From assembly GCA_965112735.1 (NCBI GenBank), contig OZ218953.1:1984001-2048000 (forward strand): 64,000 bases of DNA. The letters run 5' to 3'. Below the pieces are notes generated by a model. That model ran no database searches, was not told the DNA's origin, and saw only the letters and a list, made by a program, of their open reading frames with translations. The stretch comes from Phaeosaccion multiseriatum. Taxonomy: Eukaryota; Protista; Ochrophyta, other classes. Position numbers and translations under genes: made by a program. Shown here piece by piece: positions 17,519 to 52,100 of the stretch (position 1 is its first letter; every line of letters starts with the position of its first letter).

Positions 17519-20085
17519 ATGGCAAAGGCAGGCATGGAAGAAGGCGATGGCGCCATCTCGTTGCTGGCGCAGTTGCAGCAGGCGGCAGACACTGCAAGGG
17601 ATCGCCCCTTCCTGGTGACCGATACCGGCGATGGAAGCAGGGCTGGTCAGTTCACCTACGGGTCGACATGGCGTGATGTCGGACGCATGGCTCGCCAGAT
17701 GCAGCAGGAGGGCCTCGAAAGGGGCAGCAGCGCTGTCCTGTTCTACAGAGGAGACGCGGCCGTCTCTGCCCCACGGGCCGCCAGGGACTTTACAGTGGGC
17801 CTCTTGGCCTGCCTCAGCGCAGGGCTTGTGGCCGTACCGCTAGACCTGACGCTGCTGAGCGACCAGCAGAGGGAGGGTGGAACTGCTTCGGGGAGTAACG
17901 AGAGGTAAGAACGCAGTTCCTATCGGGCAGGAAGCTTCCGGTCGGTACCTTCTCCTCATCTTCTTTCTGTTGGCTTTACTGGTGGCTAGTTGCTGCGGCG
18001 TTGAAGTCTCCCCCCTCTCGCTGTACTACTATGTAGGCCTGGTGATCTTCTAACTGACCGCTGCTGCTGCTGCTGCTGCTGCTGCTGTCCTCCTGCTCGC
18101 TCGCTCCCTCCTCCGTTGCGGCCCGCTCACCCAATTAGATCCACAACCACACCCCTGCGGCTCCTGGAGAAGGCCGCCAAAGCGTGCTCCCCGACGGCCC
18201 TCATCATCCCCTCCGACGGGGAGACAGAGCTTCATCTGGCCGCCTTGAGGCAGAGCCCCTCGTGGCCGTCCAGTCTCGCCACAGTTCGCCAGTTTGTGAT
18301 ACCTTCCACCTCACAGGAGGATGACGACCCGGTGGTTTCGGCTGCTTCCGTTGACTGCAGCTCGGAAAGTCTTGCGCTTCGATTCGTCAATATGGGCACT
18401 CCTGAGAGGTGAGATGAGAGATCTGCAACGCGGGTGGTGCCTCCTGCCCGCCTCCTTCCTGCCTGTCTGCCTGCCTGCCTGCCTGCCTGCCTGCCTGCCT
18501 GCCTGCCTGCCTGCCTGCCTGCCTGCCTGCCTGCCTGCCTGCCTGCCTGCCTGCCTGCCTGCCTGCCTGCCTGCCTGCCTGCCTGCCTGTCTGCCTGCCT
18601 GCCTGCCTGCCTGCCTGCCTGCCTGCCTGCCTGCTGCCTGCCTGCCTGCTGCCTGCCTACCTTCCTACCTACCTGCCTGCCTGCTTGCCTGTCTTTCCAT
18701 GTGCCTGCCTGCCTGTCCAAATGTCTGCCCATAGGCCTGCCCCACCCTCTCAGCTTACTCACGAAGCCGCTGTGCTGTGTACGACATTCCCTCTCCCTAT
18801 CACCACCGCTTCAGCGAGAGTGATTTGCAGAGCTCGACGGTCACCGTGGGCATGCTGCACACTGCCATCTGTGACCAGCTCAAGAGGCACAATGTGCGCT
18901 TCCAAACCACCGGAAGCCTGGCCTTGCCCCTAGCGCCCGTGGGCCTCGCGGCTCCCTCCTTCGATGCGGTACGTTCGTGTGTGTCCAGATCAGTGGCGAA
19001 CGGAAGGCGGCAGATGGCGAAAGGGGAAAAGGCGAAGGGAGACGGACTGAGGGAGGGAGGGATGTGTGTGGAGGTAGCGACGGCGAATGAGGATTGTGAA
19101 TCCGTTGCTAAGGGCTGTTCTGACTGCCTGTGAATCGAGACCTCCGCACTCACTCCACTACGTTCCCTGGTCGCTGGTTCGCTGCCACGTATTCTTTGGT
19201 ATGCATGTACGTGTGTGTATGTGTGTGTGTGTGCGTGTGTGTGTGTGTCCACGTGTTTGCGTGTGGTTATTCTCCTGACAGGTATCGGACGTGGTGGCCT
19301 CTCTCTTGACGCCCTTCATGGGAGGCTATGGCATGCACATCCTCCCCGCCTCCACCACTCGAAGCCCTGACGCCTCCTACTGGCTGAGCACGGCAGCGAG
19401 GCTTGACTGCGATTGGGTGGCCCTGCCCGGCTCCGCGGCAGACAAGTTACTGAGCTTGTGGCGAGCCGGAGCCGCGGATGGGGCTTCCACTGAAGGAGCC
19501 CCCGGCCGTCCTGCGAGCGGCACCACCACCGCCCTTCCCACCCTCCGCTTCATCGTGCACATCGGAGCGCCCCAGGGGGACAACAACACGCGCCCACATG
19601 ACCAAGACCGTGCCAGCACTGGCAACACCGAACGAGACGAACCAAGCACCGCAGCAACAGCAGCAGCAGCGGCAGCACAAGCAACAGCTGCAGCAGCAGC
19701 AGCAGCAGCAGGCGGAGGAGGAGAAAGCTCAGACCCGATCCCGCCAGCGTTAGCGTCCTCCGTGCTGCTGCGTCCTACGAAGGAGCTCACCCTTGTAGAG
19801 CCGCACATTGGCCTTTTACAGCAGGTCAAGACTGCAGATGAGAGGGCTGTGCTCCTCACTGACATTATCCTCACAGAGGCGGTAGCGGTGCTCCCACACG
19901 CCTCCACAGACCCGGACATGGCCCTCCTAGAGGCAGGCTTCGCCAGTATGCAGCTCGCCGAGTTCGTGGCCGGGGTACAGAGCCAGGTGGTTGGAGCCAC
20001 GGGCCTGGGGAGAAGCGTCAACGTCGTGGACCTGTTCGCCCACCCTTCGGTCCGCGAGCTTGCAAAGTGGCTGGCGGAGGAGACT
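17519..20085 (+). other. PKS N-terminus: truncated, degenerate AMP-binding (FAAL/A-like) domain plus ACP0
   Basis: [18 protein letters not shown]...[30 protein letters not shown]...[19 protein letters not shown] and [19 protein letters not shown] resemble ANL-family N-subdomain motifs. No TSGSTGxPKG P-loop and no C-subdomain. ACP0 motif LLEAGFASM (Ser codon 19945-19947). Confidence 0.7.

Positions 20086-52100: not shown

Follow-up and report, generated by a model that had tools for sequence, protein, structure and literature searches.

The region considered here, called the window, is a stretch of 64,000 nucleotides from the ochrophyte alga Phaeosaccion multiseriatum (assembly GCA_965112735.1, contig OZ218953.1, positions 1,984,001 to 2,048,000; positions are counted below from the first letter of the window). 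A single locus on its plus strand, 17519-52100, carries the gene of a giant polyketide synthase (PKS), with an ATG at 17519 and a stop codon at 52098-52100. A first reading of the letters, referred to below as the original prediction, had placed here a protein of about 10,600 amino acids, devoid of a thioesterase or reductase release domain and ending in a membrane region akin to that found in epsilon-poly-L-lysine synthetase (Pls). The start, the stop and the sum of the exons (about 10,300 residues, to which the N-terminal exons are to be added) agree with these bounds. The locus is a real intron-split modular type I PKS, most modules of which lack an acyltransferase (AT). Its last acyl carrier protein domain (ACP) is followed by a Pls-type terminus, and we lean towards a role of this terminus in chain release, by acyl transfer to an acceptor at the membrane.

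The frame starting at the ATG matches the AMP-binding family of Pfam. After this first exon, the coding sequence continues approximately over 19291-20891, 21176-23005, 23234-28549, 28754-33934, 34401-39191, 39411-44774, 44947-47556 and 47774-52097. Open frames of the locus extend over 534 to 1,822 codons, and the G+C content is about 0.62-0.64 inside 17519-52100 versus 0.56-0.59 outside. The seven introns at 20892-21175, 23006-23233, 28550-28753, 33935-34400, 39192-39410, 44775-44946 and 47557-47773 measure 172 to 466 nucleotides and all have GT..AG borders. There is one intron per ketosynthase (KS), always at the identical codon and phase (...SPD / W or G / RCK...), and each long frame runs from the C-terminal half of one KS to the N-terminal half of the following KS. 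Since all seven introns split the KS at one codon, duplication of the modules evidently carried them along. At the protein level, modules 1 and 2 (exons 23234-28549 and 28754-33934) still share 95% identity. Compared with them, module 4 is almost identical in the stretch covering the C-terminal part of the enoylreductase (ER) and the ketoreductase (KR; 42000-43500) but only about 58% identical in the dehydratase (DH) and the N-terminal part of the ER. This pattern suggests recent duplication and gene conversion. Public sequencing runs matching the locus derive from one sample only; because the depth of their contigs stays even across introns and flanks, they are read as genomic.

Domains were called by Pfam on the translated exons. 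The spliced order is: relic FAAL-like pieces, ACP0, KS1, ACP1, KS2-DH-ER-KR-ACP2, KS3-DH-ER-KR-ACP3, KS4-AT-KR-ACP4, KS5-DH-ER-KR-ACP5 (with an altered ER), KS6-AT, KS7, ACP6 and the Pls-type terminus. KS1 (20188-21638, interrupted by the first intron) reads DTASSSS, with a serine instead of the catalytic cysteine and both histidines kept; ACP1 (22032-22226, GLDSLS, called by Pfam) follows it in a unit without AT. Modules 1 (22320-27764) and 2 (27867-33236) each contain a KS, split by the second and the third intron, respectively, then DH, ER, KR and ACP, again without AT. Module 3 (33321-38397) is composed of KS4, with the fourth intron, an AT, a KR and ACP4. Module 4 (38518-44055) includes KS5, with the fifth intron, DH, ER, KR and ACP5, and is devoid of AT. 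The first part of module 5 (44149-46585) consists of KS6, with the sixth intron, and an AT; no KR follows and no ACP precedes the next KS. Finally come KS7 (46841-48791, with the last intron) and ACP6 (49059-49283, LDSLS). Neither a thioesterase nor a terminal reductase domain was found in any exon by a Pfam scan at E 0.01, in line with what had been anticipated. The carrier that precedes the terminus is fed by KS and AT modules, so the proposal of a PKS in the place of the usual adenylation-thiolation didomain holds as well.

Inspection of the catalytic motifs completes this picture. KS2 to KS6 have the full Cys-His-His set and represent five intact elongating KS. All KRs are intact, and the serine is kept in all ACPs. 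Two of the seven KS units, those of modules 3 and 5, are accompanied by an AT, and four modules have none, a layout other than that with one AT in cis per module. Both ATs show the motifs GHSLG and HAFH of the malonyl type. The ER of module 4 reads GRGTG where those of modules 1 and 2 read LGGVG; because the NADPH motif is altered, this ER may be inactive. In KS7, the cysteine (ETDCSAS) and the second histidine are kept and the first histidine is replaced by asparagine (EANGLGA). From these motifs, KS7 is of the non-elongating KS0 type. Since no ACP stands between the second AT and KS7, the final elongation must be carried out by KS6, its AT and ACP6 acting as one unit. Two low-complexity inserts also lie in the C-terminal half of KS7 (48000-48450), one rich in threonine and alanine, the other rich in glutamate followed by a run of about 17 glycines. 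These inserts may be loop expansions or unrecognised in-frame introns. A glycine run also occurs within KS1, around 20430.

At the other end of the chain, two pieces homologous to a FAAL were recognised. The first exon (17519-17842) matches AMP-binding at E 1.2e-7 and, in tblastn with the relatives P0154, P0008 and P0156, at E about 1e-6; it corresponds to approximately residues 22-122 of the proteins of Microchloropsis and of a metagenome. The second piece (19291-19467; tblastn with the metagenome relative P0008, E 5e-6) corresponds to residues 263-326, approximately. The P-loop region is not detectable. A by-eye candidate for the P-loop exon at 18005-18409 was dropped, as BLASTP gave it no support. 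Between the second piece and ACP0 (19837-20073, GFASM with the serine kept, called as PP-binding by Pfam and aligned by tblastn to the ACP of P0008) lie 136 codons versus 334 in P0008, and about 200 residues that would make up the C-terminal half of the adenylation domain are absent. In the presumed intron region between the two FAAL-like exons, a long CTGC-rich microsatellite (18430-18700) reads (ACLP)n in all three frames. The truncated N-terminus, like the presence of an AT on two of the seven KS, the serine of KS1 and the asparagine of KS7, a KS with no ACP before it, had been passed over in the original prediction.

ACP6 and the terminal 900 or so residues are encoded by one uninterrupted frame of 1,552 codons (47442-52100). 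Thus, their fusion is independent of any splice. As seen from hydropathy, hydrophobic hairpins start at 49476, 50331 and 51321, and a stretch of hexapeptide repeats comes after each of them. These delimit three repeats made of a transmembrane (TM) hairpin and a left-handed beta-helix, located at 49476-50141, at 50331-51176, where the hairpin has an extra helical insert, and at 51321-51926. In sequence comparison, the third repeat is similar to the first at E 4e-13 and to the second at E 3e-5. The AlphaFold2 model computed from 91 sequences of the family (pTM 0.84) also displays three units, each with two long helices and a beta-helix. Hydropathy, internal repeats and modelled secondary structure concur on the three TM and beta-helix repeats that had been noticed after the last ACP.

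The NCBIfam model TIGR02353, which describes the Pls/PosA family, matches the terminus in three stretches at E 5.9e-47, with a score of 160.4 bits versus a curated cut-off of 423.1. The claimed match with the C1-C3 region of Pls is thereby found again, below that cut-off, and named Pls and PosA proteins are among the sequence matches of the terminus. The comparison of a predicted structure with the Pls family gave a concordant answer: with Foldseek, residues 26-852 of the model (827 residues) align with residues 611-1314 of the predicted structure of PosA, the delta-poly-L-ornithine synthetase (E 1.9e-32, TM-score 0.61). Fold searches relate individual repeats to galactoside and maltose O-acetyltransferases and to NodL, which act as O-acyltransferases. 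No solved structure matched the terminus by sequence at E 1, and a Foldseek search of the PDB retrieved single beta-helix acetyltransferases only and no solved structure for the whole domain. When 140 family members are aligned, no side chain is more conserved than a histidine of the third beta-helix (99%; consensus QTHLFEDR). This histidine is kept in the window protein (51780-51782) as well as in its eukaryotic relatives. Sequence and modelled fold together support the homology of the terminus to the C1-C3 membrane region of Pls and PosA.

A HMMER search of 1.84 billion representatives found 1,178 proteins that carry the terminal domain, none with more than 36% identity to that of the window. 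The best match is a Nannochloropsis/Microchloropsis cluster (E 6e-54, 30% identity), of which a full member is the 6,656-residue protein TFJ83820.1 (NSK_004922) of M. salina, with the order FAAL-ACP-KS-AT-KR-ACP-KS-AT-DH-ER-KR-ACP-KS-KR-ACP-KS-AT-ACP-terminus. The N. gaditana orthologue seems to have been annotated as two separate proteins, named 'polyketide synthase' and 'non-ribosomal peptide synthetase, partial' (EWM29724.1 and EWM29704.1; P0153 and P0156 lie on the same 1.44-Mb contig). The metagenome relative P0008 has the shorter order FAAL-ACP-KS-AT-KR-terminus. Two proteins of Chrysophaeum taylorii (KAJ8601122.1 and KAJ8603536.1) are of the FAAL-ACP-terminus type. This type is also found in land plants, namely in Marchantia (MpACOS18), Selaginella, Adiantum, Cryptomeria, Eucalyptus, Oryza, Typha and Lonicera, in proteins of about 2,300 residues that join amine-oxidase-like, FAAL-like, ACP, Pls-type membrane and catalase-like parts. 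The land-plant members (P0170, P0175, P0189, P0191, P0195, P0158, P0077, P0385-P0390) are annotated as hypothetical or as '4-coumarate-CoA ligase', and the relatives generally stand in public databases as hypothetical proteins. A search for other giant fusions with the Microchloropsis terminus, taken as a region of the 6,656-residue protein, scored nothing, probably since the cluster representatives are short fragments. In the literature, we found no paper naming a Pls-type terminus on a PKS or on plant or algal FAAL proteins, and the label NAPAA (non-alpha poly-amino acids) turned up for algae only as an antiSMASH call in Trebouxia. The idea of a single-gene PKS-Pls fusion is thus borne out for this locus, but not as a one-off. 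Judged by these matches, the window gene is not unique, and Microchloropsis, Chrysophaeum and land plants have PKS or FAAL proteins with Pls-type ends too.

When the terminal domains are placed in a tree, all FAAL- and PKS-linked members together with the window protein make up a set of 13 rows on one side of a branch with SH-aLRT support of 98, opposite the amino-acid-adenylating Pls and PosA proteins; FastTree recovers the same split. The rows nearest to the window terminus are the Chrysophaeum proteins (support 96), a sister position to be read with a long-branch caveat.

Considering the motifs, the chain delivered to the terminus can be envisaged as follows. The two malonyl-type ATs would serve all modules. 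Read colinearly, the line would leave on ACP6 an acyl chain with a 3-oxo and a 7-hydroxy group, a saturated tail and possibly a 4-enoic double bond. In this respect the original prediction of two full reductions, a step with KR only, a step with DH and a doubtful ER and an unreduced last extension agrees with the motifs, and so does the 7-hydroxy-3-oxo pattern; the acetyl start and the length of C12 are uncertain, in view of the relic loader. Chain length would be set by the starter: C12 if the starter is acetyl, arising from malonyl decarboxylation by KS1, and longer if a fatty acyl group is loaded in trans. Because the loader consists of a relic FAAL, an ACP and a KS with serine instead of cysteine, whereas the relatives start from an intact FAAL, the chain might be much longer than C12.

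How is this chain released? Given the homology to Pls, the minimal claim is that a nucleophile at the membrane receives the acyl chain from ACP6. The three beta-helix domains would face the side of the membrane where the ACP lies. They would let a hydroxyl or an amine of an acceptor, positioned at or within the six-helix membrane part, attack the ACP thioester. An ester or an amide would be formed and the chain released into or across the membrane. An ester is plausible because the beta-helix relatives are O- and N-acyltransferases. As acceptor, another lipid or a constituent of the wall could serve, or a second product molecule through its hydroxyl. A transfer of some kind, processive polymerisation included, is very probable. 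That the terminus is a release catalyst performing a single transfer is the more specific reading that we favour, with the balance tipping slightly in its favour. In addition to the architecture, the shared frame, the family and fold matches and the kept histidine described above, it draws on the clade of the window terminus, all members of which follow FAAL or PKS parts, on the Microchloropsis relative, which likewise has a KS-AT-ACP unit without KR before its terminus, and on some 31 kb of open frame, which argue for selection. Several points weigh against it. The TIGR02353 score stays under the family cut-off, the loading end looks degenerate from its truncated FAAL relic, and the inserts of KS7 could conceal introns. 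The public runs, since they look genomic, lend no support to splicing or co-transcription. Moreover, to our knowledge every characterised family member uses an amino-acid thioester as donor and an amine as acceptor, and we know of none that handles a polyketide or makes an ester.

The nature of the acceptor is where single transfer and polymerisation part. If the terminus were processive like Pls, the mid-chain hydroxyl would repeatedly attack the next ACP-bound chain, and an aliphatic polyester would be extruded to serve in a wall, a cyst or a coating. We regard this as possible but doubtful. The complete polymerase architecture, with three repeats and six helices rather than one beta-helix, is kept, which favours a polyester, and the characterised members, Pls (PMC8506220) and PosA, are all polymerases. 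The predicted monomer has a free hydroxyl, as would the product of P0008, and the related eustigmatophytes make aliphatic wall polymers, for which PKSs with C-terminal TM helices have been proposed as suppliers (Balzano et al., 2019; PMC6872974). However, the terminus belongs to a clade apart from that of the amino-acid polymerases, and several members of this clade follow a plain FAAL-ACP with no evident nucleophile on the monomer; both facts favour a heterologous acceptor. In addition, a secondary alcohol is a weaker nucleophile than the amines used by Pls and PosA, and a polymer of such a kind is not known. A wider proposal, in which the Pls-type termini of the window gene and of its eukaryotic FAAL and PKS relatives are membrane polyester synthases stringing carrier-bound hydroxy-acyl chains together, appears unlikely. 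We thus rank single transfer somewhat above processive polymerisation, and acyl transfer above hydrolysis.

Hydrolysis would mean that the terminus merely anchors the synthase, or hydrolyses and exports the chain; the free 3-oxo acid would then lose CO2 to yield a hydroxy methyl ketone, or be passed to elongases. In support of this view, Balzano et al. assumed free hydroxy acids as products of the Nannochloropsis enzymes (PMC6872974), and simple release from a last module that is unreduced, here and in Microchloropsis, would set free just such a labile 3-oxo acid. Against it, left-handed beta-helix enzymes are transferases rather than hydrolases, and the conserved histidine and the three repeats, all kept, would be needless in an anchor, so that this mechanism seems quite improbable. 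Yet another view is that the gene is decaying or mis-read, with a terminal part that is silent or separately expressed. The truncated FAAL, the substitutions in KS1 and KS7, the changed motif of one ER and public runs that look genomic could be taken in this sense. On the other hand, eight exons of up to 1,822 codons are free of stops, KS2 to KS6, the two ATs, every KR and the serine of every ACP are intact, and the ACP shares one open reading frame (ORF) with the terminus. A non-elongating terminal KS is also usual in algal PKSs (Shelest et al., 2015; PMC4661987). Decay is the reading to which we give least credence, a very unlikely one.

The neighbours of the PKS gene are a retroelement-like ORF of 1,157 codons on the minus strand (296-3769), probably a remnant, with a weak match to reverse transcriptases (RVT_1, E 4e-4); a NEMF/NFACT gene of ribosome quality control, also on the minus strand (8136-10607) and closest to those of Phaeothamnion, Ectocarpus, Discosporangium and Tribonema; a glutathione S-transferase gene on the plus strand (15576-16268); and a BT1-family transporter gene on the minus strand (55781-56887). 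NEMF, the glutathione S-transferase and BT1 have no evident link with a PKS. By its NEMF matches, the alga is an ochrophyte close to the brown and yellow-green algae and not a haptophyte, and an alkenone-type methyl ketone was set aside as a product. With such neighbours, and with no trans-acting AT or phosphopantetheinyl transferase gene nearby, a gene-cluster interpretation of the region was rejected.

Chain release determines the fate of a PKS product, and we found no description of a Pls-type membrane transferase as the release domain of a PKS in the literature. The terminal domain marks an entire uncharacterised eukaryotic clade, which encompasses eustigmatophytes, pelagophytes, P. multiseriatum and, among land plants, groups ranging from liverworts to eudicots. 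Were it to attach lipid-like chains to acceptors, or to polymerise such chains at a membrane, it would bear on the enzymology of algaenan-type wall polymers and of long-chain hydroxy lipids, and would offer a new off-loading part for engineered synthases. Should the polyester synthase proposal be true, it would provide a one-enzyme route to resistant, algaenan- or cutin-like polymers of walls or coats in ochrophytes and perhaps in land plants, to which no enzyme has been assigned so far. These ideas are testable because the genetically tractable Nannochloropsis carries an orthologous architecture.

Comparison with known systems helps to place this synthase. The multimodular, AT-poor type I PKSs of microalgae are likewise giant and intron-split, with duplicated modules, most of them lacking an AT, and with non-elongating KS domains before the release domain at the ends of the chains (Shelest et al., 2015; PMC4661987). 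Those PKSs, in contrast, end in thioesterase or hydrolase-like domains, none being reported with a Pls-type terminus (PMC4661987). Another such system is the PKS of M. salina, TFJ83820.1, with the N. gaditana models. These are also multi-module PKSs of ochrophytes, where a last KS-AT-ACP unit without KR precedes the Pls-type terminus, and they are annotated only as hypothetical, PKS or nonribosomal peptide synthetase. TFJ83820.1 differs from the window protein by its four KS units, its intact FAAL loader, an AT in most modules and the lack of both a KS0 and a first KS with serine for cysteine. The 'PKS-Clade II' of Nannochloropsis (AMP-PPT-KAS-AT-KAR with C-terminal TM helices), likened here by its published layout, has the same order as P0008, and was proposed as a source of hydroxy fatty acids, destined for long-chain diols and wall polymer (Balzano et al., 2019; PMC6872974). 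Unlike the synthase of the window, it is single-module, and the authors draw TM helices only, leaving the terminal domain unnamed (PMC6872974). The FAAL-ACP-terminus proteins of land plants and pelagophytes have their terminal domain in the same clade, with an acyl-type loader and a carrier to feed it, but are without KS modules, and those of plants add the amine-oxidase-like and catalase-like parts.

A further comparison is with Pls of Streptomyces albulus and PosA of Acinetobacter baumannii. In Pls, which has neither a condensation nor a thioesterase domain, C1-C3 with their six TM helices bond the carrier-bound monomer to the amine of a free chain (PMC8506220). In the window protein, as in Pls and PosA, six TM helices and three left-handed beta-helix domains in tandem come directly after a carrier domain. 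Condensation and thioesterase domains are likewise missing, the near-invariant histidine of the third repeat is kept, and the predicted fold of the whole domain matches PosA. However, the identity is only about 20-25%, and the tree places the window terminus in a separate clade rather than with the amino-acid polymerases. Upstream, an amino-acid adenylation domain is present in Pls and PosA, whereas the window gene has a polyketide line of seven KS with only a FAAL-like relic at its far N-terminus. Compared with Pls and PosA, the terminus would receive a 3-oxoacyl chain as donor, and the product itself would offer no nucleophile but a hydroxyl.

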